Assembly: GCA_965637545.1 (NCBI GenBank)
Contig: OZ281495.1
Span: 29,078,001 to 29,142,000, forward strand
Origin: Phallusia mammillata
Taxonomy: Eukaryota
Direction: 5' to 3'
Length of the DNA: 64,000 bases
Both the position numbers and the translations under genes were made by a program. Shown one piece after another: positions 1,725-56,226 of the stretch; within the stretch, counting starts at the first letter, position 1, and each line of letters opens with the position of its first letter. The notes beneath the pieces were generated by a model, which was given only the letters and a program-made list of their open reading frames with translations, did not search any database and was not told where the DNA came from.

Positions 1725-4700
1725 CTAATTTTCTTTTAAAACCTTTTTGAACATGCAAGACGACTCCTCCGTACTTATAATTTCATTTTTTTGTTTCCCA
1801 GTTTCTGATTGATTGCATTTCATGTAATCTATTTGTTTCTCATGTTTGGCAAGAATCTCAAAAATTTTGGCAAGAACCTCCTTTTCTTCAAGAATTCTTC
1901 TGTGTTTCTCTTCGTTTCTTTTTACTTCTAAAGTCAGTTGCTGTACTTTCTGATCTTTTTGCTTCAAGTCTATAGTCATTTCTAGTATTTTCTGTTCATT
2001 TTGCTTTGCTTCTGCAGTCAGCTGATGTATTTTGTGTTGTTTTTCTCCCATTTCTGCTGATAGACGCTGTTTCAAATGAGCATTTTCGGTGGTTAGTTGT
2101 GCATTTCTGGCTTCCAGGGCTTCACTTTGATTTTGAACATCTTTGTTAATTAATTTTTGTTGTGCATGAGCACACGAGAGTACATTGTAAATGTGGTTAA
2201 TGGTGTCAATTAACTCTTTCCTGTATTCACCGACCAAGTCCTTGCTTCCCATCTTTGCCTCATTAAAAGCTTGCAGTATTTTTTGCTCCAGGCGCTTGTG
2301 GTTTTGGTGACAATAAAATAGCCCGTGTGTACAGTCTTCTAACGTCTGCACAACATAACAAAATTAAACAATGACAAAAATAACTGAAACAGTTTTGCAA
2401 ATAACAAACAGTTTGTAAAAACCTTTGTCATAGTAGCCTCGTAATAAGTCGCTTTTTCTTCCAAAAGTCTTTCTAGATGGGACGTTGCCACCGACTATAA
2501 AAATATATTTTGAAACACACATTCATAAGTTAAATACCGGTTGCACCAAAAGTGTAATAGTAAGAGTAAAAGTATGCTTTCCTTGTGTCATTTTACCGGT
2601 CGTTGTTTTCAGTACTAAAGTACAATCGTATTTATCGACTTTCATATTTATTTGAAACAAACCTTGCCCAGCTGTGCAGCACTTAGATCTTGATCGGTCA
2701 GCAAGTGCTTACAGCAGTTGAGGATGTGGTCATAAATTTGCTGACCGTTGACTTTAACGCTATTTAGATGAACTGGTCGCGCGTATTTCTTGATGTCATT
2801 AAATACAGTGTCCACTTGTTGTAAAAAGTTGTCACCAATACCTATTTATACACAATAAGTCGTGTTACGAATCATTACAAGATTAACTACTATAGTCGTT
2901 TTAATTATATGACTTACCAATTACTTCAATCGGTTGCGTTTCCATTTCATTTCGTCCTTTCACGCTTACATAGGGAGTGGGAAATTTTTTTATTTTGCTC
3001 CGAGTTGCTAATTTTTCAAACCCTGTTACTTTTGCCTCTTTTGACATATTTTCATCGCACGAATCGTCTCGAATAAAAAAGGACATTTCCTAATAATGAA
3101 AATGTACCTGGCCAAGTTGAAATGTTAAACAGCAAATTAAAACGAAGGTCTTCGATTCAATTTAAGAAGAAGGCGGAACTTATTATTTAAACAACCAACC
3201 TGAAGTATGGGCTTTGGCGATCCTTCATGCAAATAGCTACAAACATCCTTTAAAAACTAAAAAATGAATCCAAAAAGATATTACCTTCAAAATTTTAAAA
3301 TAGACAAATGTGCTACACTTACATTAAAATTTTCGCTAAATCCCGCTTGTATTTGTCCAGTGAAGTTTAAGATCAGGTGCGAGCTCATAAGGGTTACAAG
3401 CGTGAATATTTGGGTCAATTCCTTCTTGGGGGTTTGATCATTTAACGTTCCTTGCTGTACGTCCATCAGGTACAAAGCAACCTGCATAATTTGTGTTAGT
3501 GGTGAGCCCAGAACTATGATACAGCCATGGGGACGGGAAAATTTTTGCATGGCAGGGGGGGGGGGGGAGTGACGTATTTGTACAGTGGTTCATTAGCTAT
3601 AAATGAAAAACAGAAGAATTGCATTGCATTCATCCTGAAACACCCTACAATGTGAAAAAACTTCACACGCAGCCACACATCCATAATCACGTGTACCATT
3701 TTGTACAACCTCAAAGATTATGGAAACAAGGGCAAGTGCACCTCCTTGACGTTCCGGCGCCCTTCGTTACAGCTTCAATAAATTTCTACAGAATGTCAAT
3801 CAACCTTGCCATTAGAAGAATCGACCATCAAAGGTTTGTCCAAGATCCAGATTCCTTCAGTGTTTGATCTGTTTCCATAATTCCGCCCAAACACTGTCTG
3901 TAACTGTTCTGGTTTGAAGAATGGAAGATAATCTTTCAACCCTTTTTTCGGCATGCCCTATAAGAAAAACGTCACATCATGCACTTATCCGGGTTTTGTG
4001 TTTTTGTATGTGTGTCCCAAAACTAAACGTTAAATCAGGTAAAAGAATAAATAACAAAACAACAAAATAAACACTGTTTTAAACAAATTGGTTCGGTTTG
4101 AATTGGATTTGATGTTCTCATTAAAACGCATGTGGCGCATTTATTGCTAATTGTATCATTTTTGCTGCAGTATGAGCCTTACATTGACGTGTCAGGTCAG
4201 GCTCCACAACTGCTACTGGTACCACGTAGCCCAGTACAACCTGTGGACGATTAAATGGCTAAACAACCCTGTATGAGTGACTTGACTTACATTAACGTTT
4301 CACCCTAATTTTTTTCGTTTCTAAAGTTTTTTCATTTTCTTTCATTTTTTTCGTTTATTTTTTTAATTTTTATTTGTGCCTAAAAAGAGTTTGTGGTTAT
4401 TTGTGATTAAAACAAACGCAAGATGCACTTTATTGTTAACAATGCACTCATTTGTACCTTAACTTGGAGATGTACAAACAAGTTGAGCATGAACGATTTT
4501 CCACTTTTCCTACTCCCGCATATGGTTATGATTGATATCGGATGTCCCTCGGCATTGTCCAGCGCTGTTTTTAAACCAGATTTATCGATTTCCAAGTGTT
4601 TCTCCTTGACTCTTTTTAGTATTTGTATGGCTTTTCGATCCTCTGAAAAAGCATATAACTTGATTTAAATCAGGTGACCTCATATATTATTGTTTAATTA

Positions 4701-4923
4701 AGTTTTTTTCTTGAATTACTCCATAACTTACTTTACGTTTAAAGGAAGTTTCTTCTTTAAATTAAGCTGGACAAAAATTATTCCTAATAATTCTAGTTAG
4801 TGTAACTTTGGCTAATGCTGTAATCAAGATCACGCATTACTTGGGGTAACAAAAATTTGGGTAATTTAGGATTTATCTTACATGTAAGAGATAACGCATT
4901 TTGCTGGATTACTTACCTGCCAT
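1725..4923 (-). CDS. Atlastin/GBP-family large GTPase-like protein with coiled-coil tail, divergent class (copy M1), about 534 aa
   Basis: Exons 4923-4917, 4642-4458, 3957-3805, 3481-3323, 3256-3200, 3089-2918, 2841-2663, 2494-2423, 2345-1725. All introns are GT-AG, total 1605 nt, open frame. Motifs: P-loop GSRKSGKS, G2 NTEGIWI, G3 region MDVQQG, FFIRD. Intron positions and phases match the plus-strand paralogues. Confidence 0.85.
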
Positions 4924-4934
4924 AACTTATTCCC

Positions 4935-7900
4935 AATGAGCAACTCGTTCTTGTTCAGAAATACTTAGAAAAACCTATACACAAAACGTTTTAGTGGCCT
5001 ATTGAAGTTCAAAGTAAAAAATACGAATAAACAAACAGAACAGAATGGCACAAATAGTTTAAGTATGTAAGTTGAATTTTATCGTTGCGTGTAACCCGAA
5101 ACAAAAAACAAAAACCGATGAAATTGCCAAGGTTGAGCGTAAGACAATAGGCGCCATAAACCGCTTTAACGAAGTGTTTGACATACAGGTCAGTGCTGTA
5201 GTGAGTTTAGTCACCAATTATGCCATCTACTATTTTGCGCAATATACCTAACTTAACTTAAATTAAGACCCCGACCAAACTATTGTTGCAGCGTGCCTGA
5301 AATTGTTTGTCAAAACGCGGGACAGCCGCATAGCTTACAAACCCCAACGCAGAAAACTGTATTAATCATATTGTTTCGTTTCAAACCTAATTTGGCCTAG
5401 TCGGTCTATCACTGCTAAGTAGGATGCGGTGATAAAAACAGGAAATGGGTAATACGTTTAGCGCATAGCAATTAGCAAGTATACCCAAGCGTTAAATATC
5501 TTTTCTTAGGCCATACAATCGAACCAGTTGAAGTACTGGAAAAACTGACGTGTGAGATTTTAGCTTTGTGACCCCTGGCCTACGCTTTCTGCACAAGTGC
5601 TCAAGGATGACAGACGCTGCAAAGCCGGTGTTTGACACCTTGCATACATTCCACCATTCGTGCCGTTACGTGGCCATCACCGTTCTCGCTTCATATGCTG
5701 GCATATCAACACTGCACCTTATCTTAACTAACCTATCAAAACCAAAATCAAATCGTTATATATAACGCCTTTAATGAGCATGGCCAAATCACAGTACACC
5801 AGACCCATTGAAAAGTGTCTATCATATTTCTATATCAGTGATCGCTGGTCCGCAAATACGCTTCAGGGCTGATCCCAGTATTAAAATAGCCCGTTCACCT
5901 TGACAAACCAAAATCTGACAGACAAAGCCGCACAGTGTAAAAGATATTATACTTCCACACTAATAGGTGCTACGTCGACCAAACATGACTCACACATAAA
6001 ACGGAAACGCTGACGTGTTTGTGATTCTACATGGGAGCCACTGCGAACTGTGAATCCAAAAACAATGTATTAAGAATTTTAAACAACAAAAGACTTTCAA
6101 TGGATTCACAAAAAAGCAATCGGAGTGGAAATAAAACACAAGCCCTACTTAAGTCAGTGTTGTTTTTACAAAGTTTATACAACAGATTTTTTTAAACATT
6201 AAAGATTTTTTTAGACTTAAGTATGACGAGGTCAAGAATTAATGATTTTTGAAGACTTAAGTATGGCAAAAACAACACGGCTAACATAAAAACTTCTTGA
6301 TCAAACCAAACCCAGTCAAGCAATAGCTCTGACAGCCATAACGTATAGTTCAAAAAATATTGTACTTCTGCACTATAGGGTGCTAATATATAGGCAACTC
6401 GGTTTTGTTCAGAAAAACTTGGAAAAACCTACACACAAAACGTTTTGTGGCCTATTGAAGTTCAAAGTAAAAAATACGAATAAACAAACAGAACAGAATG
6501 GCACAAATAGTTTAAGTATGTAAGATAAATTTTATCGTTGCGTGTAAACCGAAACAAAAAACAAAAACCGATGAAATTGCCAAGGTTGAGCGTAAGACAA
6601 TAGGCGCCATAAACCGCTTTAACGAAGTGTTTGACATACAGGTCAGTGCTGTAGTGAGTTTAGTCACCAATTATGCCATCTACTATTTTGCGCAATATAC
6701 CTAACTTAACTTAAATTAAGACCCCGACCAAACTATTGTTGCAGCGTGCCTGAAATTGTTTGTCAAAACGCGGGACAGCCGCATAGCTTACAAACCCCAA
6801 CGCAGAAAACTGTATTAATCATATTGTTTCGTTTCAAACCTAATTTGGCCTAGTCGGTCTATCACTGCTAAGTAGGATGCGGTGATAAAAACAGGAAATG
6901 GGTAATACGTTTAGCGCATAGCAATTAGCAAGTATACCCAAGCGTTAAATATCTTTTCTTAGGCCATACAATCGAACCAGTTGAAGTACTGGAAAAACTG
7001 ACGTGTGAGATTTTAGCTTTGTGACCCCTGGCCTACGCTTTCTGCACAAGTGCTCAAGGATGACAGACGCTGCAAAGCCGGTGTTTGACACCTTGCATAC
7101 ATTCCACCATTCGTGCCGTTACGTGGCCATCACCGTTCTCGCTTCATATGCTGGCATATCAACACTGCACCTTATCTTAACTAACCTATCAAAACCAAAA
7201 TCAAATCGTTATATATAACGCCTTTAATGAGCATGGCCAAATCACAGTACACCAGACCCATTGAAAAGTGTCTATCATATTTCTATATCAGTGATCGCTG
7301 GTCCGCAAATACGCTTCAGGGCTGATCCCAGTATTAAAATAGCCCGTTCACCTTGACAAACCAAAATCTGACAGACAAAGCCGCACAGTGTAAAAGATAT
7401 TATACTTCCACACTAATAGGTGCTACGTCGACCAAACATGACTCACACATAAAACGGAAACGCTGACGTGTTTGTGATTCTACATGGGAGCCACTGCGAA
7501 CTGTGAATCCAAAAACAATGTATTAAGAATTTTAAACAACAAAAGACTTTCATTGGATTCACAAAAAAGCAATCGGAGTGGAAATAAAACACAAGCCCTA
7601 CTTAAGTCAGTGTTGTTTTTACAAAGTTTATACAACAGAATTTTTTAAACATTAAAGATTTTTTTAGACTTAAGTATGACGAGGTCAAGAATTAATGATT
7701 TTTGAAGACTTAAGTATGGCAAAAACAACACGGCTAACATAAAAACTTCTTGATCAAACCAAACCCAGTCAAGCAATAGCTCTGACAGCCATAACGTATA
7801 GTTCAAAAAATATTGTACTTCTGCACTATAGGGTGCTAATATATAGGCAACTCGGTTTTGTTCAGAAAAACTTGGAAAAACCTACACACAAAACGTTTTG

Positions 7901-9291
7901 TGGCCTATTGAAGTTCAAAGTAAAAAATACGAATAAACAAACAGAACAGAATGGCGCAAATAGTTTAAGTATGTAAGATAAATTTTATCGTTGCGTGTAA
8001 ACCGAAACAAAAAACAAAAACCGATGAAATTGCCAAGGTTGAGCGTAAGACAATAGGCGCCATAAACCGCTTTAACGAAGTGTTTGACATACAGGTCAGT
8101 GCTGTAGTGAGTTTAGTCACCAATTATGCCATCTACTATTTTGCGCAATATACCTAACTTAACTTAAATTAAGACCCCGACCAAACTATTGTTGCAGCGT
8201 GCCTGAAATTGTTTGTCAAAACGCGGGACAGCCGCATAGCTTACAAACCCCAACGCAGAAAACTGTATTAATCATATTGTTTCGTTTCAAACCTAATTTG
8301 GCCTAGTCGGTCTATCACTGCTAAGTAGGATGCGGTGATAAAAACAGGAAATGGGTAATACGTTTAGCGCATAGCAATTAGCAAGTATACCCAAGCGTTA
8401 AATATCTTTTCTTAGGCCATACAATCGAACCAGTTGAAGTACTGGAAAAACTGACGTGTGAGATTTTAGCTTTGTGACCCCTGGCCTACGCTTTCTGCAC
8501 AAGTGCTCAAGGATGACAGACGCTGCAAAGCCGGTGTTTGACACCTTGCATACATTCCACCATTCGTGCCGTTACGTGGCCATCACCGTTCTCGCTTCAT
8601 ATGCTGGCATATCAACACTGCACCTTATCTTAACTAACCTATCAAAACCAAAATCAAATCGTTATATATAACGCCTTTAATGAGCATGGCCAAATCACAG
8701 TACACCAGACCCATTGAAAAGTGTCTATCATATTTCTATATCAGTGATCGCTGGTCCGCAAATACGCTTCAGGGCTGATCCCAGTATTAAAATAGCCCGT
8801 TCACCTTGACAAACCAAAATCTGACAGACAAAGCCGCACAGTGTAAAAGATATTATACTTCCACACTAATAGGTGCTACGTCGACCAAACATGACTCACA
8901 CATAAAACGGAAACGCTGACGTGTTTGTGATTCTACATGGGAGCCACTGCGAACTGTGAATCCAAAAACAATGTATTAAGAATTTTAAACAACAAAAGAC
9001 TTTCAATGGATTCACAAAAAAGCAATCGGAGTGGAAATAAAACACAAGCCCTACTTAAGTCAGTGTTGTTTTTACAAAGTTTATACAACAGAATTTTTTA
9101 AACATTAAAGATTTTTTTAGACTTAAGTATGAAGAGGTCAAGAATTAATGATTTTTGAAGACTTAAGTATGGCAAAAACAACACGGCTAACATAAAAACT
9201 TCTTGATCAAACCAAACCCAGTCAAGCAATAGCTCTGACAGCCATAACGTATAGTTCAAAAAATATTGTACTTCTGCACTATAGGGTGCTA
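4935..9291. repeat. Near-identical tandem repeat, 3 x 1453 bp, followed by a diverged partial sub-unit to about 9480
   Basis: The same 65-aa ORF recurs at 5568, 7021 and 8474 (period 1453). Units differ by only a handful of bases, e.g. gactttcaatgg vs gactttcattgg and ggcacaaat vs ggcgcaaat. Confidence 0.97.
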
Positions 9292-10050
9292 CGTCAACGC
9301 CAAAAATGGAAATGCTGACGTGTTTGTGGCATGACCACCGCTCAATTTCGACAGGGAGCCACTACGAACTATGAATTTAAAAACAATGTACAAAGAATTT
9401 TCAACAACAAAACAATTTCAATGGATTCATAAAGACATTAATCATAAGTAAAATAAAACACAAGTCATACCCTAAGAAAATGCTGTTTTTGCGATTGGCA
9501 GTTCACCTGTGCAACAATTATGTATTTTACGTCATTAATCCCATGCCCAAAACGATTTGTAATATAAAATTACATTACAGACAATAGCCACAATGAATAA
9601 AACTTGTCACAACCTATATGGAGCAAAGAAAACAATTGCTAAAACTATTTTTTTTTACTTTCTTAGCAAAAATAGAACAGTAAATCCAGCGTAGAATTCC
9701 GAAAACCTACTTTTGTTACTATTAAAAAGCTGTTATTTTGGTCAAAAACAGCTACATGAATGTAGTCAGCATAATCAGACGATTGTGGTGCATTGTTTTC
9801 TGGTACGTTACCGAGTGGTGAGTGTTTTTGTTGTTGTTCTGTCGTTAAAGTGCTGTGGATTTGGAACCAAAAGTATCCAATCTGACCGCACTAAACGAAC
9901 ATTTTGATTTCTGTAAGTCTTTTTAGGTTCAACATTGCCGCTTTTTCAAGCTGTGGTCACCAGACGATATAGACGTGCACATCTTTCTAGTATAAGTGGG
10001 AACAGAAGTAGCATATATGTACATTTTTGTATCTCCAGTTGTGTTGCAAT

Positions 10051-13000
10051 TTATTCAAATATCTGTGATGTCCCGGTGTTGGTCGTGTGCTTGTCGCAAT
10101 TTTGTTCATCATGTTTTGGTATCGTTGGCATTATGGATTCATTAAATGTTGTCAAACTTTTTGAAATATTCTCCATCAACTCCGTCTGTTCCTCATTGTG
10201 TGTTTGGTTACATTTCATTTGTTCTATTTGTCCCTCATGGTTGCCTAGAATCTCATAAACCTTTCGATTCTGCATTCCCTGTTTCTTTTCCAACTCTTCA
10301 ATTTTGCGTTTTTTTTCCTTCAGTTCTATAGTAAGCCGTTGTATTTTTTGTTCTTCGTCTTTGACAGCAGTTCTCAGTTTTTTTATTGTCTCTTGGTTTT
10401 GGTTTGCGTCTATAGTCAGCCGTTGTATTTTTTGTTGGTTTTGCTCTGCGTTTTCCGCCAGTTTTTGCAGTTTTTGTTCGTTTTCTTTTCTTTCAGCTGT
10501 CAAACAAGCATTTTTGTTTTTTAGTTCTGCATTTGTAGTCATCAGTTCTTCATTTTGGTTTTGAACCACACCAAGCGAAAATTTCCTTTGTGCAAATGCA
10601 CATGACAGGACCTTATAAATGTGGGTAATGTTGTCAATTAACTCTTTCCTGTATTCTGTGACCAAACCATCACTTCCTAGCTTCGGAGCTTTGTCAAAAG
10701 ATTGTAGTATTTCTTGCACCAACCGCTTGTGGTATTGATGACAATTATAGTGGCCTTCCTTGGAGCCTTGTAAATCCTGGACAAGAAAATTAAACAATTA
10801 TTAAACTCCCACAATTTTACTCCTGTTACTTCCACCAAAGAGTACTTAAATGGCTACAGAATGGTCAAACTGTGTATGTCTTATCCCCACTGCACTGATG
10901 AGACCTTACCAGTGGAAATAGTGTGCACTGTCTGTAGCTTACTTATCATTAATTGCCTTGGTAGTTTGATACTACATTTACATAAAAAATACACCTATGC
11001 TTACCGTTGTCATAGTAGTCTCATAGTACGTCGCTTTCTCTTTCAAACGTTTGTCCAGTTGCGAAGTTGCCACCGACTAAATTTTTTTGTATTTCTGTTT
11101 AAGATAACTATATGTGCGCAAATATGAAAACGAACCTCGTTAATATCATCAATTTTCTCTGCCATCTCTCCCTTGCATTTTTCTATTAAGTCATGTCTTC
11201 CCCACTTGGGAGCTTCATCAAATTTTTGAAGGGATTTTTCCTTAAGGTGCTGACAACTGCGTTCACCTTTTTCAAAGTCTTGCAAGTTCTGCGCATTAGT
11301 ATATATAAAACGGTTTGAAAATTGTAGTTTTGATAATAAATTATGCTCACCTTATTAATAACACTTTCGTACTTTTCTACACTTTCCTCCAACAGTCTTT
11401 GTAGCTGTAAAGAGGCCATCGCCTAAAAAGGTTTTGCTTTGATACCGAATTACAATTTAAACAAGTTTCTGTAGCTACAAAAAGTAACACTTGCTACATG
11501 CAGCAACTTTTGTGCATCTATGCAACATAAATCAGGCGACCTACAGTCATAACATGACTTTTGTTTTGAATCCAAGGATTTAGGAATAATCATTTTTTCA
11601 GTCGACAAACCTTGCCCAGCTTTGCAGCACTTGGTTCTTGATCGGTCAGCAAGTGCTTGCAGCAGATCAGGGTGTGGTCATAGATTTGCTGACCGTTAAG
11701 TTCAAGGTCATTTTGTTGAAATGGTCGTGCGTTTTGTTTGATGTCATTAAATACAGTGTCCACTTGTTGTAAAAAGGTGTCACCGATACCTAATTACACA
11801 CAATGTGCGTTTAGTGGTGTTACAAATCATTTCCAATTTAAATCGCATAGATATTTTACTTATGACCGACCAAGTATTTCAATCGATTGTGTTTCCTTTT
11901 CATGTCGCCCTGTCACGCTTTTATTAGGAGTGGGAAATTTTATTATTCTGGTCCGAGTTGCCAATGTTTCAAACCCTGGTACTTTTGTCCCCTCTGCCAT
12001 ATTTTCCTCGCACGAATCGTCTCGAATAAAAAAGGACATTTCCTAACAATAAAAAAGTGTCCGAAAAGTTTGTAGTATAAAACAGCAATATAAAAACACA
12101 ATTACAAAACCACATTAGGTAATTTTAAACAACCAACCTGAAGCATAGGCTTTGGCGATACTTCATGTAAATAGCCACTAACATCTTTCAAAAACTAAAA
12201 CAAAGTAGAAGCATTAAACTAAACCAAAAACTTTTTTAGAAAATAGCTTTTACTTTGTGTTACTGAAAGTGGAAATTGACAACATGCTACACTTACTTCA
12301 AAGTTTTCACTGTACGCTGCTTGTATTTGTCCTCTAAAGTTCAAGATCAGGTGCGAGCTCATAAGGGTTGCAAGAGTAATTATTTGAGTCGATTCCTTCT
12401 TAGAGGTTGAACTATCCACCGTTCCTTGTTGTACGTCCACCAGATAAAGAGCAACCTGCATTTTTTGTGGTGATGAACCGGAAACTAATTGTCAACTGCA
12501 ATAAAGTTCAAAAGAAAGTTAATCAACCTTGCCATTTAAAGTATCAACCATCAAAGGTTTGTCCAGCATCCAGATTCCTTCACTGTTGGATGTTCTGCCA
12601 TCATTCCATCCAAACACTGTCATTAACTGTTCTGGCTTGGTGAAGGCGGAAAGGATTGCCCACCCTTTTTTCGGCATTCCCTAAGAAAAATATCGCATTG
12701 ACCAATCATGGTAAGTAATAAACTTCTTGTAAAATCCATCCTCACTAACGCTTGACTTAAGTTTCATATAAGCAACTGCAGTGAACGGGACAGATTGCGT
12801 TCTTTTGAACGCCTCGCCGAGTGCGCCGTATTCGCCAATCAGCATTACGTTTTTTTCTCTAGCTCAGAGAAACACACCACCCCAATTTTAATGGAAACAC
12901 ATTTCAAACAAAAGGAATTGGTAAATTATTAAACTGATGTCACTCAGTGTTAAAGAGCCACGCACAGAAAAATTATTGTTTTTTTAGATGCCAGAGGGTC

Positions 13001-14669
13001 ATAAAAAGGGTCATTTAATAGATGTAAGAGGGTCATAAAAACGTCTGCAGTGTTAAAATTAAAAAATCAATGTTTAGAAATACAGTTTGAAATCTAAAAC
13101 ACCGACACCCTGCGAATATTTTTACAGCTAAAATGCTAAATGTTCGCGGGAATATCGTAAAAACGGCAAGTGATTAAAATACAAGACTAAGAAATATCGA
13201 ACAATACGTTCCGCCATTTTTTTTACCTTTATATGGAGATGTACAAACACGTTGAGCATAAAGGACTTTCCACTCTTCTTGCCTCCACTGATGGTAATGA
13301 TTGATATAGGATGTCCTTCGGCATGGTTCAGTGCCGTTTTCAAGCTCAGTTTATCGAGTTGAAATTTTTTGTCCTTGCCTCTTTTAAGTATATGTATGGC
13401 TTTTCTTTCCTCTGTAGCAAACGTTAGCTTGATTATAATTTTGTTATGACGGTTGTTTACAACGTACATTGCCGTTGGAAATTAATTTCACCATCATTAA
13501 CAGATGTTGGATTTCAGCTTTAACTATATATAGGCCTTTATTTTATATTTTTCATTCCAAGATAGGGGTGGCTTTGACTAATAATTTACTTCACTTTTAA
13601 GCTACCCTCTAATACTATTGCTACGTATTTTTGGCATCACCCTCTGACGTCATAAATGCAATTCTATGTTGCGTCGTTGTAGCGAGACGTGGCCCTTGAG
13701 GTTAGACGGGGAGAGTTGGTGTTGAGCGGTGGTTCTGTCGCGACCGTTATATCTGCATTGCTTGTCTTTTATCGTTTGTACTCTTTTAATATTTTAATAC
13801 AAGTATAAATTGAGTGCTGACAAATTTCTTTCCAACAGCGCCTTTAGCTTTTCAAAGCTTTTTACCACTATAAATATCAACAAATAATAAATGTTCTGAC
13901 TAAAGAGTTATACGGTTTTCTGTAGTAAGAAATACCTTTTTCCAACGAAGTTGAAGATGTGTTTTCTTTGTAGATGTCCACCTTCTGAAAAAAACAAACA
14001 TACTAAATGTACTTTGAATTGAATTCAAAAACACATTTGTAAGCTCAACTTTTAGTTGCTTCTAGGTCATTTATAAGCCCGTGACACTATTTTTTCGCTT
14101 TTTTTCTTTTTATCTTTTCTGGGTATGCGATTTGTTCAATAGATAGTGTTTTGACTCAAAAATACGCAGCTTACTTCTGTCTGTCTGAGTCCGTTTCGAG
14201 CCGCAAGTGCAAGATTTCGTTTAGCATCTTCTTTCCGCCTTCGCAATTTGTCCGGTCTTGATTTTACTTTTTGATGAGAAGTAATTTGAATTGACTCAAA
14301 TTGACCCACACCGTCTTGGAATTCGCTGGAATATCTTGAAAGAGCCTTGTTTATCTCAGCCAACAAAGCACCGGATTGACATGCATCCGTCACCCTTTGC
14401 GCTATCTCCGATGTTTCAGCAAGGACTGTGAGAACTAGAGAGTCCCTGAGAGTCCCTCGGCGTATACGCTCGACAATAGCTCCTGTCACCTCAGTTACTG
14501 ACGCGCATATGGCGTCAACAAATCTATTTGGATTTTGAACCTTCCAGAAAAAATATCCACCCGCAGTTGCCGCTGCGGCTATAGCAAGTTGTGCAGACCT
14601 CCCATGCAATTCAATAATAATCACAGACGTATCAATTAACAATCTATCTACTGGCATTGAAACTGCCAT
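10051..14669 (-). CDS. Atlastin/GBP-family GTPase-like protein, divergent class (copy M2), with N-terminal extension and duplicated helical module, about 823 aa
   Basis: Exons 14669-14175, 13984-13936, 13411-13227, 12680-12528, 12455-12297, 12194-12138, 12042-11871, 11789-11611, 11422-11351, 11288-11136, 11076-11005, 10776-10051. Total 2472 nt, open frame, GT-AG. Motifs: P-loop GGKKSGKS, NSEGIWM, VDVQQG, FFIRD. An acceptor AG lies 2 nt before the ATG, so a further upstream exon is possible. Confidence 0.82.
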
Positions 14670-16655: not shown

Positions 16656-16813
16656 GTTCAAGTCAAATTCAAACCGTCCCGGTTTCGACTTGATCTGTTC
16701 CGCACTAAAACGCTTTTTCAGCAGTTCAGAGCAAAGAGGTTGAATCCCAGACATCTGCATTAACGCAAGGTAGCGCTACAGAACAAGCTCAACCACCAGC
16801 TTACGACGACTAA
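16656..16813 (+). pseudogene. Orphan last exon of an MS4A-like gene with two premature stops
   Basis: Homologous to 23695-23852, with frame (G)SSQIQTVPVST*SVPH*NAFSAVQSKEVESQ...EQAQPPAYDD*. The upstream intron (about 16430-16655) and 3' UTR are also homologous. No earlier exons were found. Confidence 0.85.
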
Positions 16814-42440: not shown

Positions 42441-42489
42441 TGTGTATAGGCGAACTGAAATAAAAGCACACAACAGCATACATCGTGAT

Positions 42490-43981: not shown

Positions 43982-46900
43982 ATGACAGGTATGTATGCGC
44001 ACAAACAGTACGTAGGTCAATATTTGCAGTCTGTTTCTACTTTTTCCACACATTTTTCGTTTAAGGACTCATAGCCAATATTGAGATTTATTGTGTTCAT
44101 ACATTTGCCGTCGTACTAAATCTATCAAGGTTACGCTGCTATATTACCGCACATTTGTTTGGTTTCATGGCAACCTGACATATAAAAGCAAGCTAAACTT
44201 GAGGTCAATCGTTAATGCTTGATTTAAACCCGATACCTTATCGTAGTGGGACAAGGACTGCGCAGTTTATGACCCTGGGAAACACGTAAGGAAAATCACT
44301 AAACCCACAGTCTGCAGACCAATAAACATTACAACAAAGATCAACTTTCATTTCCCTTGTATACATTGCAATATTGCCTAAGTTTAACATTTTTTCAGAC
44401 AATTACAACACCGTCCAAGTTCTGATCAAAGGCCCAGACGACTCGTTTGATCTTAATAAAGACGGTTTGAAAGCAGCTTTGAAGAATGCATGGGAATATC
44501 CTGTTTGTATCATCGCCATCTGTGGTGACAAAAGAAAGGGAAAATCCTTTATTCTCAACATGTTTCTTCGTTACCTTATAAAGGTAGAATTATAATGTAT
44601 AAAGTTTATGTTTGTAATTGTACCAAACACTTTCACTGACTTAATCTAAAAAGTTGTTTAAAGCAATGTACTGACTTCGTTGTTGCCTATAAAAACAGTT
44701 GTGATTCAGGATTAACGACAGAGGTGTCAAACCGTAATCTCAAGACAATTAGCTCTTTTACCAAAAAACTGCTCTGCATAACCAACAACGTCAGATTTTT
44801 TTATGGGGAGATTTAGTAATTTTTTATTAATTTTGGGTACTTTTTTGCAGGGTCTACCAAAAACCTCACTATTGTCATACTGGTGGGGTACCAAGGAAGA
44901 TCTACATGCAGCTTTCGAGTGGAGAGGAGGGTCAAGAAGAAACACAGAAGGAATCTGGATTCTTGACAAACCAATCCTGGTCGATACCCTCGATGGCAAA
45001 GTGAATATTTTTATTTATTTTTGCTACGAAGTTCGATCAAGATATAACTTTGCAAAACAGAAATTTGACAACAGCTCGTATTAGCAAAGTGTAGTTTGTA
45101 CTGCTAGCTAACGCATACATTGTTGAGTAATAACCTACAGTCAAAATAGGCCTGAAAACATCTTTATATTTAACCAGGTTGCTCTTTACTTAATGGACAC
45201 ACAAGGAATGTTCGACAGTCAAACCTCCAAGAGGGAATGTTCCCAGATTTTTGCTCTTGCCACGCTTATGAGCTCACAGCTTGTCTTCAACCTCATGAAA
45301 CAAATACAAGCAAACGATCTTGAGTATCTTGACGTAAGTTTGATAATATTTACCTCGACAATATCGTTTCAAAACACGTGTGTACCCATCTGATTTAATT
45401 ACATAAAAAATGTCTAAGACTTTAACTGAACAAAACGATACAAACCGTTAAAAAACGACGTTATATAGTAATGTGAAAAGCGTTTTAGAACGATAGTTTT
45501 TATGCAAGCTTTATAAGTTGTCATAATGTTTGTTATTAAACTTAGACGTTTTCTGGCGACCACAATAGACATTTTTCTTTGCCTTGTAGTTTTGGACGCA
45601 GACGGCGAAATTTGTAAACACTGGATCAGACGAGGCATTTTTTCAGGTATTTCTTTTGATTTTATGCCTTTATTTAAAACTTATAGTAATGAGAGTTAAC
45701 ACCATTGTGTAATACACAAATCAAAATTACCATGAACATGAAAATTCGAAATTGCAGAGTTTGCTGTTCCTCATCCGGGACTTTTCCTTTCCCGATTATG
45801 GTTTTGGAATCCAAGCAGGGGAACGTTATCTTCAGGAGGAGTTGAAAGAGTCTGACGACAAAACGGCTACAGTGAACGAAAACATCAGAAACTTAAGAAA
45901 CGTGTTTTCCAGTGTAAATGCATTTGGAATGCCAACACCTCATAAATCCGTCACTGCGCGAAAAGAGGAAGACAAACCGGTTAATTTGCAGTGTAAGAAT
46001 AAAAATAGAAGTGCCGTTTACAATTATTTTTGCCATTTTACCAAAACGTGTATTTAAAAAAAAATAAACATGTTTATTACTGCATATTTCAGATGCTGGA
46101 AAATCGTTCATGCAGAATGCTGAGGACCTGTTTAAGCATCTTAAGGAAAATATCTCTCCTCTGAGTTTAAACGGAAGTCCGATGAGCGGAGAACAACTGT
46201 ACGACTACGTGTTGAGTTGCGGCGAAAATCTGCTTAGTGACCAAGTTCCTGATCCAGTTAGTCTGAGTGAGGTGAGTCCCATTGTTTTCAAAATTGTAAA
46301 GCAGCATAGTAGTTTTGTGATTTTACCTGAACACTGAACACACATTGTTAGGAGTGGTTTTAAACGTGTTATTGCATTCTGCAGTCGGTTTCAAAGTTCC
46401 AACTTGGAAAACTGGTGGAACAAGAAAAGGCCGAATACGAGAGAATCATGAAAGAGGTAAGTTCAGTTTTAATTCCAGAAAATGATTACGTAGGCTATTT
46501 TCAAAGTGGTTTAGTCCTACCCTGGTAGTAAATTTTCATAAAAATACAATGTGTCCAATTGAGTACGCAGTCAAGCTCGTCTCACGTGCATTTAATACAA
46601 AGTAAATACTTCGTTTGTCTTCAGTGAAAACGGACAGCTTTGTGCTGTAATTGTTTTCACACAACTCAGATTTTCGGAAAAGTGTCAAAAACTGGACTTG
46701 ATTTGACCTTATCTATGAGCGTGTACTGTTTGCAGCTTATATCGAAACCTGTTTTATATTTTTGTTGTGAGGCCAACTTGCCAACTCTTTAGTTTTGTGT
46801 ACTATCTTGCAACACTATTATACCTCACAGGCGATGGACACCTACGAAGGTACGCTTTCTGATCTCTATAAATATCACGAGCTGCAACTCCTCGAGGGGC

Positions 46901-48519
46901 TGGGAAGATTTGACAAGGTTCATAAGTTCGGCAGAGATGATGTGATTATGGACTACAGAAATACGCTCAAGCTGGACATTGTCGAAATTTACAACGTCCT
47001 CTCAACCTATTTTACCCAAAAGTTAGAGCTGAAAGACTCCGAGAACAAGCGAGAGGAAGAGGCAAGGATTGCCAAACTAAGGGAAGATCAATTGGGCGAC
47101 ATGGTACAGAGACAGGAAGATCAAATGAAAGAAACAGCTGCAAAACACGCCAGGGATGCAGAGGAGATGAAGAAGCGACTTGAAGAACAAGAGAAGCGTT
47201 TTCAGGAAGCAGAAGAACAAAGAAAAACGGAAACGGAGGAAGCAAGAAAGCTGCTGGAAGATCAACAGAGGCTACACAAAGAAGCGGAAATCGCGCGAAG
47301 CATGGAGGCTGCCGAGGCAAAAGCTCGGTTTGAGGATCAAAAGCAGAAGATTCAGAAAATGGAAAATGACAATTCGAAACAGGCGCAGGAGGCACGAAAG
47401 AACTTCCAGCAGATGGAGGCGCGTCACAGGCGGGAAGAACAAGAAAGAAAAGCTGACGCAGAAAAGGCGCGTCAAAATTATGAGCAACAAATGAAAGATT
47501 ACAAAACGATGCAGGAGAAAAAAGAAACAGAGGCTAAATCAGCGAGAGAACAGCAACAGAAAATGTGGGACCAGCAAAAAGCTGCTGACGATCGTCGATA
47601 CGAGGAGGCCAAAGCAGCACAAGCAAGAACAGAAAAGCAATTACAGGAAATGCGACAAAAACTGCAAAATCACCCGAGGCGTGTAAGTATTTTTTCATCA
47701 CATATGGGTTTTTTTAATTCTAAACTGCAAATTGCAGTAAATGTTATACTGCTTTTTTTGTAAACATGTTGTTCAATCACGTTTGTAGAGCTCTTCTGAC
47801 AAATGTAATTATATTCCGACGTTTCGACGTCTCATATAGGTCGTCTTCATCAGGGTAGATAACACTGAATGCGACTAGTACAGTGCATTCACGCGTTATC
47901 ACAAGGCCGCCGTATTGATATTAATGCGGCGTCTGTTGTGGCCCGGGAGCCTGACTATAGGAAAAGATTATTTCTTGAGTCATGGAATATTCACCAACGG
48001 GGTAACACAATGAACATCAAAACAGACGTGATGCTTTCAACGTGCTACAGGCACCTCCTTAAAGATTCTCGCGCGGTGCTTTCGTTGCGTTGTGACGTGC
48101 TTGCGTTCCATTATTTTTCCTTTGTTTATCGTGCACTGTCCTCGTTGCATTCAGTTTTATTTACCCGGATGAAGACCAGTGCTGGATTAACCATTAGGCA
48201 AAGTAGGCACGTGCCTACAGGCCAGTCAAAAATCCAGGCCACAAAATTATGACAATGATTAGGCAACACTGATAATTCTTTTTTTTCTTTGGCAACCCTG
48301 ATTTTCGGGCCACTTATAAAATGTGCCTACTTCCCAGCAGACCCTTAATCCGGCAGTGATGAAGACGACCTGTACATTTCTCAGAAGAGCTATACAAACT
48401 TGATATTATGCCTTGATATGGCAGCAAATAGCTTATATGTTGGTCAATAGTCAAAAACCTTAATTATACTTGCTTAACTTGTTTTCCAGAAACGAAAGGA
48501 TAAGTGCATCATCTCATGA
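43982..48519 (+). CDS. Atlastin/GBP-family large GTPase with coiled coil and CaaX box (copy C), about 640 aa
   Basis: Exons 43982-43988, 44399-44583, 44851-45000, 45178-45333, 45590-45646, 45758-45992, 46093-46271, 46385-46456, 46831-47682, 48490-48519 (1923 nt, open). G1-G4 intact. Ends KRKDKCIIS*. Confidence 0.9.
47781..48399. mobile_element. Penelope-like retroelement remnant (GIY-YIG C-terminal fragment, inverted ends, hammerhead core) in the last intron of gene C
   Basis: Plus-strand peptide HALSQGRRIDINAASVVAREPDYRKRLFLESWNIHQRGNTMNIKTDVMLSTCYRHLLK resembles the end of PLE GIY-YIG endonucleases. Inverted repeats at 47781-47807/48373-48399 and 47838-47852/48357-48371. Hammerhead core on the minus strand at 47853-47818. 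Absent from the 139 bp equivalent intron of gene D. Confidence 0.75.
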
Positions 48520-50259
48520 ACTCATTTTCTATTTGTCTTTGAAAACTGCTTTTAATTTTTGTTTTGTTCTATTTCTTGTGTGAATATTCATGTGTGAATA
48601 TTTTTATGACACTATTTTCATGTGCTGGGTGTGATTTGTTTAAAATCTTTTAACTAATATTTGTTTTAGTGTTTTATACGAGACTGATTTTCATCGCTAT
48701 GTACCTATATTCCAAAAACATTTTACTGATCTATTTTGTAAACATGTTAGTCAATCAATACACGTCAAAAATCCTATTTTTACTTGCTTAACTTGTTTTA
48801 CAGAGACGAAGGTAACTGCATCATCTGAACCAATGAACCATTTCCAGTTCTTGCTTTGCCAATGAAAAATGCCTTTTGTTTTTGTTATATTGTTAGTGTG
48901 AATATCCAAAGCTGTTTTTATGATAATGGTTTCATGTGTTGGGTGTAATTTCTTACCAAGCTAAATATCTCTTATATTTTGTAACTTTTCGTTAAACAGA
49001 CATCCACTTCTTGAATTTCAACCAAACTTATCGGTCTTTGTAACTATTTTTGTGCGGTTTGGCAATTGTAAAATTGTTTACATGGTTTTGCATTGCTACA
49101 TCTATACGTGTTTAATCTTACTTCTGTTGCATTTTTTGTGTGTGATGTTATCGATACCTTTTCGATTTATGCTTTTTTGCTTTCATATGTCCTTTTTTGC
49201 ACTTGACAGAAAGCAGTAAAAAAGAAAAAAAGCCTAGAAGAGCGTACTTGTTTTGTGTCACTTAATATTGTGTCATTTTGTAATGTGATTGATGTGTATT
49301 AGGCACTTTTGCTTGTTGTTTGACGTGGTCCTTTTAAAATCATATATTTGATATTTGTTTCAGTGTTTAGTACGCGATTGCTTTACGTTACGACATCCCA
49401 CAACTCTCTCAGTATCTCAGAATTTTTTTTAATATATCAATTGTGAAAAACATTGCATAAATCGGTTAAAGTGTGTGCAATAAAACCGTGGGTGTTAAAA
49501 GCCCCTGGACTTGACTTCTAATCTGTTTCATACTTCCAAAAACTTGATAGGTTGCCTATGTGCACCTGAACATTACAGTGCACAAATATTCTGCATCGCA
49601 TTTTCAATAACGTGTGGTATTAATTAGCGAAACCAGAGTTTCGTCTAAAGCAGTGGTTCCCAACCTTTTTGTAGTCACGGACCCCTTTTATAAATTTTAT
49701 CGGTCCGCGCACCCCCAACGTAATTTAGTCTTTTTTCGTTTCCTTCATTCATTATACCTATACGTTATTATACTTTTTTGGGGGCAGAATTGTAATCAAC
49801 CTTCACAGTCCTAATAAGGTTCTGTACTGTAGCAGTCAATGCAACAAAGAGATAAATTTTCTGGTGTACAATACTTAAAACAAAGCACAAAGAATTATAT
49901 TGTTAATGTATGTTGTGATGTCACAATGGAGGAACAATCACAAGTTTTTCTTGATCCAAGGATTTGATAAACAGTTTGCACTCAGATGCAGGATTGTAAA
50001 AACGGTTTGGGAACTTAAAAATATTGTACTGTTGTTGTTAATACTACTACAAATGTTTGTTGCTGCGTCTGATGTAGTCGACCAGAAAACTTTTGACACA
50101 GTATAGGGCCTATAACATTTTATGTTACAAAACTTATATATCTATGATTGCGAACTACAATAGCGAATAGCTACAACCAAAATCACTTTTCATGGAAAAA
50201 GATAACTCAGTAATAAACCGCTGCCCACAAAGTGCCCCTTAGCATAGTCGTAATTAAGG

Positions 50260-51734: not shown

Positions 51735-54700
51735 ATGACAGGTATGTGTGTGCACTGACAAACAGTATTTTGCAGTTTGTTTTTCTCGTTTTGTCATGTT
51801 TGACCACTCCTATATAAACACACATCCAATATTGTCGACAATGAAATGTCTGGTTACAAGCGTATGTTTGTACGGTTAAGAGCACATGTCAACTTTATTT
51901 CAAGGATGGATTTAATCTCGTTTTGTTGGTATATAACCGAGGTTGCTCACAATCACAGCCTTCGACATTTTAGCACACACTGGAAAAACTGTGGTTGTAT
52001 TCATACGTTTGCCCTCTAATCGACGTGTACTATATCTTTTAAGGATACGCTGCTTTATTTTCGCAAAGTTGTATAGTGTTATAGCAACATGACACATAAA
52101 AGCAAGGCGATCTTAAACTCAGCCATACATACCTGATTTATTTCAATCCCTTGCAAGTAGGACAAAGTTTGCGGAGCGGTTAATGACTCTGGAAAACACG
52201 TAAAAGAAACCACTAAATCCATAGTTTTCAGACCTATAAGCACGTCATAAAAGATCAACTTTGATTGTTTTTATTGCTAAAATACCTTAGATAGTCTGTT
52301 ACCATGTTTTAAGACAAGTACAGCACCGTCCAAGTTCTGATCAAAGGCGCCGATGACTCGTTCGATCTTAATAAAGTCGGTTTGAAAGCGGCTTTGAAGG
52401 GTGCATGGGAATATCCTGTTTGTATCATCGCCATCTGTGGTGACAAGAGAAAGGGAAAATCCTTTATTCTCAACATGTTTCTTCGTTACCTTGTCAAGGT
52501 AGATTTATAATGTAAGATCTAGGTTGAGTTAATAAATTGCGGTTTTATCTAGAGCTATTGACAATTTCTTTGGCTAAAGAGGTATTACGGGAACGTAATG
52601 AAGTCTTCTATTCCCTGGAAAAGCAGTAAAGGTTGTGTGGGGTTTAAACAATTCTGACTAAGCACATTTTAGCACACAGGGCTGTAATGGGTTCTTCCTT
52701 GTCTGCGCTTTAAAATAAGCCGTGTTAGCACACATTTCAATTGTTTATCAGGCAATAAAATTGACCCTTTAAAAAATACCCTTTAAAAATACATTTGCTG
52801 ACTCATTTATGAAAAGAAAGGGCAAAACTTGGCGGAGCAGTTTTGCTGTCACACTCATCATTACGTCCGGTTTGCTTTAGAGTTTTAGGGGGACTTTATA
52901 ACTTTTTATTGATTGCCAAAGTTAAAGCGACGTATATTGGACTTTAGGATAAATTGGTGGCATACCATTACAAAATCGTTTCCAAATGTGTTTTTTTGTT
53001 ACCGACACCCGTGACTAGTATTTTCTTCTGATCGGACAAACCAGCAATGCCTTCGCTTTAAAATAAATTGAGAAATTGTTTACAGGGCTTACCTGGTAAA
53101 TCAAGTCTACTGTCATACGTGTGGGGTTCAAAGGAAGATCTACATGCCGCCTTCGAGTGGAGAGGAGGGTCAAGAAGAAACACAGAAGGAATCTGGATCC
53201 TTGACAAACCAATCCTGGTTGATACCCAAGATGGCAAGGTGAACATTTATTGTGTTTCAGTTTTTTTAAGTTCTACAGCTTTCAACTTTAAAGGGAAAAA
53301 CACATTTGGGGTCCTATTTTAACAAAGTACAGTTGCCTTTTCGCCTGTCAACAAACATGTGATTGACAACAGCTCATAACAATACAGCGCTAGTCTTTAC
53401 TGCCGTCTAGCGGATACAAGGTTACTTAACCTACGGCCAAAAGGGACTTTGATAAGCTTGTGAACATTTTTATATTTAACCAGGTTGCTGTTTACCTAAT
53501 GGATACACAAGGAATGTTCGACAGTCAAACCTCTAAGAAGGAATGTTCCCAAATTTTTGCTCTTGCCACGCTTATGAGCTCGCAACTTGTCTTTAACCTC
53601 ATGAGACAAATACAAGCAAACGATCTTGAGTATCTTGACGTAAGTTTGATAACATATTCTCCCAACAATTTGCCAGTTGAAGGCGCTTTCCTGTTTTCTG
53701 GACACTAAAGCCTTTAAGACTTTGAAGAAATAAAACGTTACAAACAGTTAAAAAACGACATATTCACAAAATTAGTGTTTTTGAAACTATTGCTGTTATG
53801 TATGCTTCAAAAGTTAGGTATTATTTTTGGTAAGCTGCAGACGTGCACACTGTTTCGACCTATATTGTCAGTGCAGCTGGTGAGAAGACAACGCCGTATT
53901 GGCTGGTGTAGCCATTTTTTATTTGCTTTGTAGTTTTGGACGCAGACGGCCAAATTCGTGAACACTGGATCAGACGAGGCATTTTTTCAGGTATTCGTTA
54001 CATTTATTCTTCTGTTTGAAATTCCGTGTTAACACCACTGCAGAATACCAAACCAAAATTGCCAGAAATTTAAACCATACTAAAATTGCAGAACTTGCTG
54101 TTTCTTATCCGGGACTTTTCCTTTCCGGATTATGGCTTCGGAATCCAAGCAGGGGAACGTTATCTGCAGGAGGAGTTAAAAGAGTCTGACGACAAAACGG
54201 CTACAGTGAACGAAAACATCAGAAACTTAAGAAACGTGTTTACCAGTGTAAAAGCATTTGGAATGCCAACACCTGATAAATCCGTCACTGCGCGAAAAGA
54301 GGAAGACAAACCGGTTAATTTGCAATGTAAGGATTTACAACTAATACAAATGTCACTAATAATTGTTTTATAAACGTTTATTCTCGTGAAACTTTTGACA
54401 AACGCTTCGTCTTTGAGAAACCAACTTACACAAATTGAAATTGTTTGTTGCTGCATTTGTAGATGCTGGAAAACCGTTTATGAAGCACGCCAACGACATG
54501 TTTAAGTATCTGCAAACAAACATCACCCCTCTGACCTTAAACGGAAGTCCGATGAGCGGCGAGCAGCTGTACGACTACGTGTTGAATTGCAGCGAAAATC
54601 TTCTCAGTGACCAAGTTCCTGACCCATTTACTCTAAGTGAGGTGAGTCCCAGGGTTCCAAAAGCCGTGTAGTAATGCTGTCATTTTACCTGAGATTCTGG

Positions 54701-56226
54701 TCGGAGTGTTTTCTTATCTTGTTTTTGCATTTTGCAGTCAGTTGCGAAGTTCCAACTTGGCAAGTTGGTGGAACAGGAAAAGACCGAATACGAGAGAGTC
54801 ATGAAAGAGGTAGCAACTATATGAATTTGTGAAATTTATTAGATATTTTTAGTGGGATTAGCTCCATTCTATACAGGTTCTGAGTTGTGGTAAAATTTGG
54901 CGAATTAGGCTAAATACAAAGCTCAACAGGTCCTGTGCGCATTTAACGCAGAGTGGCTGATTGGCTTCACATCTGCAAAATACTGACTGTTCTGTGTTGT
55001 AACTGTTTTACGCCCAACGCTATTTTACTGAGAAACTTTAAAAACAAGCGTTCTGATTTCAAACAAAAACAAAATTCAATTATACTGTATGCACCTTTAC
55101 GAACTTCCAAATCTAACGAAACCTGAAATATACTTTTGTTGTGAGACCAACTTGCCAAATTTTTAGTTTCTATATACTATACTGCAACACGATCATACAT
55201 CACAGGCGATGGATACCTACGACGGTTCGCTTTCTGATCTCTACAAATATCACGAGCTTCAACTTCTCGAGGCACTGGGAAGATTTGACAAGGTTCATAA
55301 GTTCGGCAGAGATGATGTGATTATGGACTACAGGCGTACGCTGGAGTCTGATGTTGCCGACATTTACGACGTCCTGTCTTCCTATTTTACCCAAAAGTTA
55401 GAGCTAAAAGACTCCGAGAATAAGCGAGAGGAAGAGGCAAAGATTGCAAAAATGCGAGAAGATCAATTGGGCGACATGGTCAAAAGACAGGAAGACCAGA
55501 TGAAAGAAACAGCTGCAAAGCACGCCAGGGACGCGGAGGAGATGAAGAAGCGCCTTGAAGAACAGGAGAAGCGCTTCCAGGAGGCAGAAGAACAAAGAAA
55601 AAAAGAAGCCGAAGAAGCAAGAAAGCTCATGGAAGATCAACAGAGGCTGCACAAAGAGGCTGAAATCTCGAGAAAAAGGGAAGCTGCCGAGGCAAAAGCT
55701 AGGTTTGAGGAACAAAAGCAAGATATGCGAAAAATGGCAGATGACAATTCGAAACAGGCACAGGAGGCACGAAAGAACTTCCAAGAGATGCAGGAGCGTT
55801 ACAAGCGTGAAGAGCAAGAGAGAAAAGCTGGCGCAGAAAAGGCACGTCAAAGTTATGAGCAGCAAATGAAAGATTACAAAGCAATGCAGGAGGCCAGAGA
55901 GAGGGAAGTCAAAGCAGCAAGAGAACAACAACAGAAGATGTGGGATCAAATGAAAGCTGCTGACGATCGTCGATACGAGGAGTCCAAAGTAGCACAAGCA
56001 AGAACAGAGCGGCAACTAGAGCAAATGCGACGAGATCTGGAAAATCAGCGAAATTACGTAAGTACTGATAACAGAGTTTTGTCACCTATCTCTTTAAGTT
56101 CTAAAATCCGACTTACAATTTTGCTGCCCTGATTTGTAAATATGTCAATACAAGGATTCCCAGATCCTAACTTTTCTTGCCTAATTTCTTTTGCAGAGAC
56201 GAAGTGATCCGTGCATCATCTCTTAA
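51735..56226 (+). CDS. Atlastin/GBP-family large GTPase with coiled coil and CaaX box (copy D), about 641 aa
   Basis: Exons 51735-51741, 52314-52498, 53086-53238, 53484-53639, 53934-53990, 54092-54326, 54463-54641, 54738-54809, 55206-56057, 56197-56226 (1926 nt, open). G1-G4 intact. Ends RRSDPCIIS*. Confidence 0.9.

Follow-up and report, generated by a model that had tools for sequence, protein, structure and literature searches.

In a window of 64,000 nucleotides from the tunicate Phallusia mammillata (assembly GCA_965637545.1, contig OZ281495.1, positions 29,078,001 to 29,142,000 of the forward strand; the window is this whole stretch, and its first letter is position 1), it was found that positions 1725-56226 carry six intact paralogous large-GTPase genes, g1 to g6, with common exon lengths and intron phases. 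Judged by sequence comparison and by modelled fold, the six genes encode proteins that derive from atlastins and not from GBPs. The interpretation that we favour is that they form a lineage-specific tandem family of atlastin-derived GTPases, some of them lipid-anchored, which most likely serves in cell-autonomous defence; taken as a whole, we hold this interpretation to be evenly balanced between right and wrong. The DNA is that of an animal, gap-free and with a GC content of 36-41%. The locus had been singled out by a reading of the letters alone, made without database searches (the original prediction), and we report here on how its claims compare with the results of a computational analysis.

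Exon families, referred to below by letter, were obtained by an all-against-all comparison of stop-to-stop open reading frames (ORFs), which sorted into eight coding-exon families with six copies apiece, besides a few orphans. For the spliced models, each paralogue was matched to g5 and GT-AG introns with equal phases were required. An open reading frame ran through all six models and the splice phases were conserved, which bears out the claim that six GTPase genes follow one intron-phase pattern. The exons measured 185, 150-168, 156-159, 57, 235-238 (172 in g1 and g2), 176-179 and 72 nt, followed by a long last coding exon, and in every gene except g2 the first coding exon was tiny, with 2-3 codons and a phase 1 donor. 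The closest paralogue of g5 was g6, with 91% identity in the G domain. RNA contigs, examined for g5 only, reproduced all nine junctions of this gene (runs from four studies), including the one that leads from 47682 to the tail exon at 48490 over a last intron of 807 nt, and this tail exon was spliced in the RNA of two runs. The public P. mammillata protein P0001 (CAB3224310.1, "atlastin-2-like", 640 aa) was identical to the g5 model but for two residues. Similarly, P0033, a transcript-derived public protein, equalled the g4 model but for a few residues, and P0002, also public and transcript-derived, corresponded to an N-truncated g3, matching from residue 78 to an identical C-terminus. These results show that g3, g4 and g5 are expressed. 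At position 46898, RNA contigs of two runs, but not of two others, carried C instead of G; since this change coincides with one of the two residues that distinguish g5 from the public protein, it is probably an allele. Two of the three matching public proteins are named only "atlastin-2-like", and the names are automatic; the sequences are thus already public under such names, and what they represent is a structurally interesting and well-supported gene family.

When full-length g5 was compared with the PDB by phmmer, atlastin-3 was matched over residues 10-402 (E 1.5e-49, 172 bits), and the other matches were Drosophila atlastin (4e-49), ATL1 (4e-48), RNF112 (1e-26) and GBP2 (1e-10, 44 bits). 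The atlastin matches spanned residues 7-404, which takes in the G domain together with all of the three-helix bundle, and the HMMER alignment to ATL3 reached query residue 402 and ATL3 residue 406; no GBP scored better than 1e-10. Single exons ranked the same families in the same order as the full protein. In P0001, P0033 and P0002 (g5, g4 and the N-truncated g3), Pfam recognized only PF02263 (E 3e-45) and reported neither PF02841 (GBP_C) nor a RING, the proteins beginning 2-3 codons before the G domain. The AlphaFold model of g5 (mean pLDDT 77.8) displayed a G domain, a bundle, two long helices (383-474 and 492-626) and a disordered tail; its helices at 296-310, 318-351, 356-376 and from 383 onward indicate that the middle-domain bundle is present. 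With this model as query, Foldseek placed the ATL1 cytosolic domains on top with the whole domain covered (E 1.7e-34, TMt 0.75-0.79), then RNF112 (E 5e-23) and then the GBPs (about 1e-19, TMt about 0.46). The original prediction that the G-domain motifs are closer to atlastin than to GBPs was therefore confirmed, by phmmer with exons and with the full protein as well as by alignment with ATL1. That the genes are true orthologues of the vertebrate-type GBP family, with which they have the Pfam GBP N-terminal domain and, in two members, a CaaX box in common, is hardly credible in view of 172 bits for atlastin versus 44 for GBP, a match that continues through the atlastin three-helix bundle, a Pfam result without PF02841 and a fold ranking of atlastin before RNF112 before GBP. 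RNF112 (ZNF179; PDB 9jju-9jjx), the second-best structural match, also combines an atlastin-like G domain with a middle domain, but it has an N-terminal RING and C-terminal transmembrane (TM) segments of its own, and neither was seen in the Phallusia proteins, which start at the G domain.

The likeness to atlastins (ATL1-3 and Drosophila Atl) comprises about 400 residues of G domain and three-helix bundle (E about 1e-49) and stops where the atlastins have their two-TM hairpin, in place of which the Phallusia proteins have a stalk followed by a CaaX tail, an amphipathic tail or no tail. No 19-residue window at Kyte-Doolittle 1.6, and hence no TM segment, was found in any of the six spliced models, whereas TM segments were present in all of the 119 ATL1 controls, in agreement with the earlier claim that the hairpin is missing. 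In the alignment with ATL1, the charged helix set in exactly at the onset of the first TM segment of ATL1. A coiled coil of 200-290 aa had been claimed, and this did not hold: past the three-helix bundle, the helical extension measured about 137-239 aa, the claimed length being too long since part of the bundle is itself encoded by the last big exon, and heptad periodicity was confined to g1 and g2, whose stalks were clearly coiled coils (heptad power of 1.04 in g1). The stalks of g3-g6 were about 50% charged and 14-17% hydrophobic and showed no 3.5-residue periodicity, which suits a single, charged alpha-helix, or a hairpin with loose packing, better than it does a coiled coil built of heptads.

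Among the members of the family, the tail at the C-terminus is interchangeable. In g5 (KRKDKCIIS) and g6 (RRSDPCIIS), a basic stretch and a canonical CIIS box are encoded by a small exon of their own, which sits behind a strong polypyrimidine tract. It is known that a CaaX box in which X is Ser directs farnesylation, as does the CTIS of human GBP1, and by this rule the CIIS box predicts farnesylation of g5 and g6. The claim that some members end in CaaX thus stands for g5, where it is RNA-confirmed, and for g6. The tail exon of g4 encodes an amphipathic Gly-rich segment and no CaaX box; in atlastins an amphipathic helix follows the TM segments at the C-terminus, and here an amphipathic segment ends g4 only. 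For prenylation, the CSRK that ends g3 is a non-canonical and poor signal, a canonical lipid-anchor signal and a CaaX box are both absent from g1 and g2, and a search downstream of g1-g4 found no CaaX tail exon. A hydrophobic read-through of exon F in g4 was considered as a tail anchor and rejected, as the transcript-derived protein splices to the other tail exon.

The alignment with ATL1 also showed that the catalytic motifs of atlastins are kept in g3-g6. Their P-loop reads GDKR[K/M]GKS, with the arginine at the position of ATL1 R77, switch II reads DTQG and the RD region is intact; switch I is FEWRGG in g4-g6 and FESKGG in g3. In contrast, the P-loops of g1 (GSRKSGKS) and g2 (GGKKSGKS) have lysine instead of arginine at the arginine-finger position, switch I is degenerate, switch II contains a one-residue insertion (DVQQG) and 23 residues are deleted after RD. 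On these grounds it is probable that g1 and g2 bind nucleotide but are poor at hydrolysing it, and the altered motifs agree with the proposal that the locus contains both catalytic and putatively non-catalytic members, a feature by which, together with the tandem multigene arrangement, it differs from atlastins. An analogy, and for g1 and g2 only, may be found in the IRG system, an unrelated family of defence GTPases in which GMS regulators with an altered P-loop control catalytically active GKS effectors. In g2, the model extends upstream of the G domain into predicted exons that are phase-compatible and keep the frame, since the N-terminal ORF ends at a phase-0 donor and a 49-nt exon restores the phase required by exon A. 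By language-model features, this N-terminal exon was nearest to TRADD-like_N clusters (PF20694; 0.87, 177/256 shared), which we take as a lead towards a TRADD-like domain of the death-fold adaptor type.

To place the family, a maximum-likelihood tree of G domains was built with vertebrate ATL1, invertebrate atlastin-like proteins and a plant GBP-like outgroup, and without ATL2/3, RNF112, Sey1/RHD3, BmAtlastin-n or vertebrate GBPs. The six genes grouped as a single clade (100/99) with a long stem, inside which g1 and g2 shared another long branch; the clade was not sister to vertebrate ATL1, and its placement among the invertebrate atlastin-like proteins was without support. An exhaustive representative protein search with exon D gave 27 matches at E<=1e-3, of which none from outside the locus exceeded 42% identity, only the paralogues of the locus itself being above 50%, and no Ciona orthologue surfaced to which the label LOC100175442 on g3 could be traced. 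Word-indexed protein searches with P0001 and with an alignment of 14 sequences gave 9-11 matches, none of them a canonical atlastin or from Ciona, which looks like an effect of the word index, and one with a fish atlastin gave vertebrate ATL1 only. Pairwise dN/dS ranged from 0.18 to 0.39 (0.18 for g5-g6, 0.31 for g5-g3 and 0.39 for g1-g2, with g1-g5 within the range), so that in the four pairs compared the genes appear to be under gene-wide purifying selection. Proteins annotated with a "GB1/RHD3-type G domain" in the flatworm Macrostomum lignano and in mites and ticks also have atlastin-like G domains followed by coiled coils. P0032 of M. lignano has a coiled coil and ends in a basic stretch plus CVLM, and P0020 of the mite Halotydeus destructor and P0042 of Styela clava have Gly-rich hydrophobic tails like that of g4. 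Such invertebrate proteins share 25-40% identity with those of Phallusia, do not group with the clade with support and have no known function. Since the flatworm P0032 has a CaaX tail, the layout is not unique to the Phallusia lineage, and P0032, P0020 and P0042 together suggest that TM-less derivatives of atlastin form a broader radiation that is as yet unstudied. Our literature search found no paper on tunicate atlastin-like GTPases or on atlastin-like GTPases that bear a CaaX box.

As for the mechanism, each protein keeps the cytosolic module of atlastin and has a helical stalk of 140-240 aa instead of the hairpin. The four members with intact P-loop arginine, DTQG and RD (g3-g6) are predicted to bind and hydrolyse GTP and, by analogy with atlastins and GBPs, might dimerise via their G domains. 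Of these, g5 and g6 would be farnesylated and lie peripherally on membranes, with their G domains held tens of nanometres off the bilayer, an arrangement that could allow nucleotide-dependent tethering or the formation of a coat. With nucleotide bound, poor hydrolysis and heptad coiled coils, g1 and g2 might act as regulators or scaffolds. The role is the weaker part of the proposal: the family would most likely act in cell-autonomous defence, in place of the GBPs that are reportedly missing in tunicates.

The case for defence is circumstantial and is made by analogy from a tandem family prone to turnover, a GBP-like layout, an antiviral atlastin homologue in the silkworm and the reported lack of GBPs in Ciona. 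Membrane attack, which the original prediction also proposed, is likewise a hypothetical role. Like vertebrate GBP1/2/5, the Phallusia proteins have a large G domain, a long helical part and a CaaX box (CIIS here, CTIS in GBP1), and GBPs also occur in tandem clusters with birth-and-death dynamics; the G domain, however, is far closer to atlastin. To our knowledge, interferon does not exist in tunicates. In the silkworm, BmAtlastin-n and Atlastin3/4 have an atlastin-clade G domain and a coiled coil, lack TM segments and are cytoplasmic, and the TM-less BmAtlastin-n restricts baculovirus (BmNPV) and also microsporidia (PMC4926086). Compared here by description only, this type of protein is from an insect, 770 aa long and without a reported CaaX box (PMC4926086). 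A review has asked whether atlastins took over the defence role of GBPs in invertebrates that lack them (PMC9005921).

It is possible, although we give it clearly less than an even chance, that the genes are instead housekeeping paralogues, soluble and lipid- or helix-anchored, with a normal, non-immune function in membrane tethering or in shaping organelles (endoplasmic reticulum [ER], Golgi, endosome or cortex, for example in eggs or embryos). In sequence and in fold, the ER-fusion atlastins are the nearest relatives, selection is purifying, g5 was found in the RNA of at least four independent studies, and across the protein atlas uncharacterised atlastin-like families with coiled coils and with hydrophobic or CaaX tails have expanded in mites, ticks and flatworms, where no link to immunity is known. 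However, relics, mosaic exons (both described below) and divergent non-catalytic members in a tandem expansion are seen more typically in families for defence or sensing than among core trafficking genes, the clade is on a long branch and exon D was not conserved outside the species in the exhaustive search, and the only TM-less atlastin homologue that has been studied functionally is antiviral (PMC4926086). Within the interpretation of a defence family, a more elaborate scenario can be drawn in which tunicates independently rebuilt a GBP-like defence from an atlastin ancestor, with g5 and g6 as farnesylated, long-stalked effectors that would coat the membranes of pathogens or damaged membranes, g4 as a sister effector with an alternative membrane tail, and g1 and g2 as hydrolysis-impaired regulators, one of them connected by its TRADD-like N domain to death-fold signalling; in all its parts, we regard this scenario as doubtful.

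Several points weigh against a lipid-anchored defence family. The defence role, membrane localisation, prenylation and GTPase activity of the family are putative, and the g2 N-terminal fusion and the models of g1, g2 and g6 are predictions. A canonical CaaX box was found in only two of the six genes (g5 and g6), and the AlphaFold confidence in the stalk was moderate (pLDDT 50-70 over about residues 450-540). The layout had been equated with that of GBP1; the G domain, the long helix and, in two genes, the CaaX box stand, but between the stalk and the helical domain of GBPs there is no homology, PF02841 being undetected. Gene-wide dN/dS showed no diversifying selection. Pfam gave no match that would support the TRADD-like assignment of the g2 N-terminal exon, and a fold search with this exon was not significant, TRADD-N (1f3v) being ninth with E 0.22 (AlphaFold pLDDT 56). 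Uncharacterised proteins of a like build occur in further invertebrates, among them the flatworm protein with the basic-CVLM tail. Finally, the absence of GBPs in tunicates goes back, as far as the second-hand account in PMC4926086 extends, to an analysis of Ciona (Li et al. 2009).

The locus nevertheless offers a concrete test case, in an experimentally tractable chordate, for the question of whether atlastins replaced GBPs (PMC9005921). The family pairs solubility with a predicted farnesyl and basic anchor, the two properties through which GBP1 is an immune GTPase that coats membranes, and the members of this putative type share a tandem cluster with paralogues that probably hydrolyse GTP poorly. 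Even if it is non-immune, the family is informative, as it shows how a membrane-fusion GTPase can become a peripheral membrane protein when its hairpin is exchanged for a stalk plus a modular tail, and it has links to the broader, unstudied radiation of such proteins among flatworms, mites and ticks.

Between g2 and g3 there is one block with two MS4A/CD20-like genes, Ma and Mb (Table 1). The original prediction had MS4A-like genes mixed into the GTPase locus, and this is correct in that two intact genes are present; they form a block between the subclusters, however, and do not alternate with the GTPase genes. In scans of single exons, the Pfam CD20 family matched exon 2 with E 0.0012 and 19.3 bits in Ma (cut-off 27.9) and E 0.11 in Mb, and in a protein atlas the best named clusters for exon 5 of Ma were MS4A3/CD20, with a modest score of 0.78. 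With a Pfam match below the cut-off and a modest atlas score, the MS4A identity is likely but not proven. Both genes encode a Cys-dense, palmitoylation-like cluster directly after the fourth TM segment and a C-terminal PPPAY of the type bound by WW-domain ubiquitin ligases (22150-22320, 23695-23849, 27625-27783 and 28331-28497). Within the MS4A relic near g2, positions 16637-16808 were 78% identical to 28314-28483.

It has been reported that Ciona has 29 MS4A genes, that ascidian lineages including Phallusia underwent expansions of their own, that the genes are clustered, and that ascidian MS4A genes are expressed in the palps and have been proposed to encode chemoreceptors (bioRxiv 10.1101/2022.08.15.492342). 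Since ascidian MS4A genes are so numerous, clustered and lineage-expanded, their adjacency to the GTPases is weak evidence for a partnership. We consider it unlikely that GTPases and MS4A-like proteins are a functional pair, with the latter as membrane receptor or anchor and the cassette duplicated as a unit. Such a pair would account for the two intact MS4A-like genes between the GTPase subclusters, for the GTPase exon-B and exon-F relics that flank Mb and for the MS4A 3'-exon relic near g2, but there is a single MS4A block for six GTPase genes, g3-g6 were duplicated without MS4A copies, and chance adjacency is likely among numerous clustered ascidian MS4A genes. Most likely, the MS4A-like genes were co-located by the chance of cluster dynamics and are not obligate partners.

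Returning to the GTPase family, its turnover has left several traces (Table 1). The exon-B relic is a seventh member of its exon family, and the exon-F relic was 89% identical to g4 (30163-30412 versus 40837-41088). The tail exon of g5 has a degenerate duplicate downstream, within 48804-48830, and one RNA contig end (run X2) runs into this copy, a hint of a CaaX-less g5 isoform ending in RRR. Identities were mosaic: exon C of g4 was 90% identical to that of g5, versus 61-74% for the other g4 exons, and exon D of g3 was 88% identical to g5 over its first 185 nt, versus 47% for the remainder. We read the relics and mosaic exons as signs of birth-and-death and gene conversion, and the exon-B and exon-F relics, the tail-exon duplicate and the mosaic identities uphold the birth-and-death features claimed in the original prediction. 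A non-coding stretch upstream of the exon-B relic (24262-24417) was 72% identical to one upstream of g4 (36237-36394), which is consistent with a segmental duplication of sequences that flank the GTPase genes.

A decaying locus, with most copies functionless pseudogenes, might also be expected to show what is seen here: relics of exons, a tail-exon copy that has degenerated, a repeat inserted into the last intron of g5, and altered catalytic motifs in g1 and g2. We find such decay very improbable, as each of the six models is a complete open frame whose splice phases are conserved, dN/dS lies well below 1 and transcripts support g3, g4 and g5, for which decay is largely contradicted. Even the value of 0.39 for g1 versus g2 is that of constrained genes and not of pseudogenes.

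Table 1. Positions in the window of the GTPase genes, the MS4A-like genes and their relics.
Feature	Position	Strand	Description
g1	1725-4923	-	534 aa; predicted divergent atlastin-like GTPase; spliced model, open frame
g2	10051-14669	-	748-aa predicted model including upstream exons; G-domain-to-stop part 10051-13411
g2 upstream exons	13936-13984; 14175-14669	-	predicted; 49-nt exon and N-terminal exon (165 aa); phase-compatible, frame kept
MS4A last-exon relic and flank	16452-17016	+	69% identical to 23496-24066
Ma	18861-23849	+	MS4A/CD20-like; seven exons, 276 aa, four hydrophobic (TM) segments
exon-B relic	24844-24975	+	switch I region; no neighbouring G-domain exons
Mb	25940-28497	+	MS4A/CD20-like; intact, 276 aa, seven-exon plan as Ma
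exon-F relic	29917-30411	+	frameshifted 3' end of a g4-like exon; upstream half in shifted frame
g3	31961-35706	+	582 aa; P-loop GDKRMGKS, switch I FESKGG, shorter charged stalk, end CSRK
g4	37366-41283	+	658 aa; canonical motifs, charged stalk; tail exon 41218-41283
g5	43982-48519	+	640 aa, ten coding exons; tail exon 48490-48519
g5 tail-exon duplicate	48804-48815	+	degenerate; reads RRR then stop, CaaX box lost
g6	51735-56226	+	641 aa; tail exon 56197-56226; predicted by homology to g5

Other features were noted around the genes. A tandem repeat with a 1453-bp unit, in three copies at 99% identity (4940-9291) plus a diverged partial copy (9234-9490), begins 17 bp upstream of the predicted start of g1 and fills most of the space between g1 and g2. 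Downstream of the family, two ORFs at 59117-59866 (minus strand, 249 aa) and 63345-63749 (plus strand, 134 aa) had no Pfam match, and just downstream of g6 an ORF of 330 aa (56981-57973) contained a THAP zinc finger (Pfam E 2.8e-5) and is perhaps related to transposases, whether domesticated or still active. Within the last g5 intron, RNA contig depth at 47725-48315 rose to 91, far above that of the flanking exons, with strand-switch joints; this segment overlaps an ORF (47869-48252) and resembles a repeat or mobile element that is transcribed.

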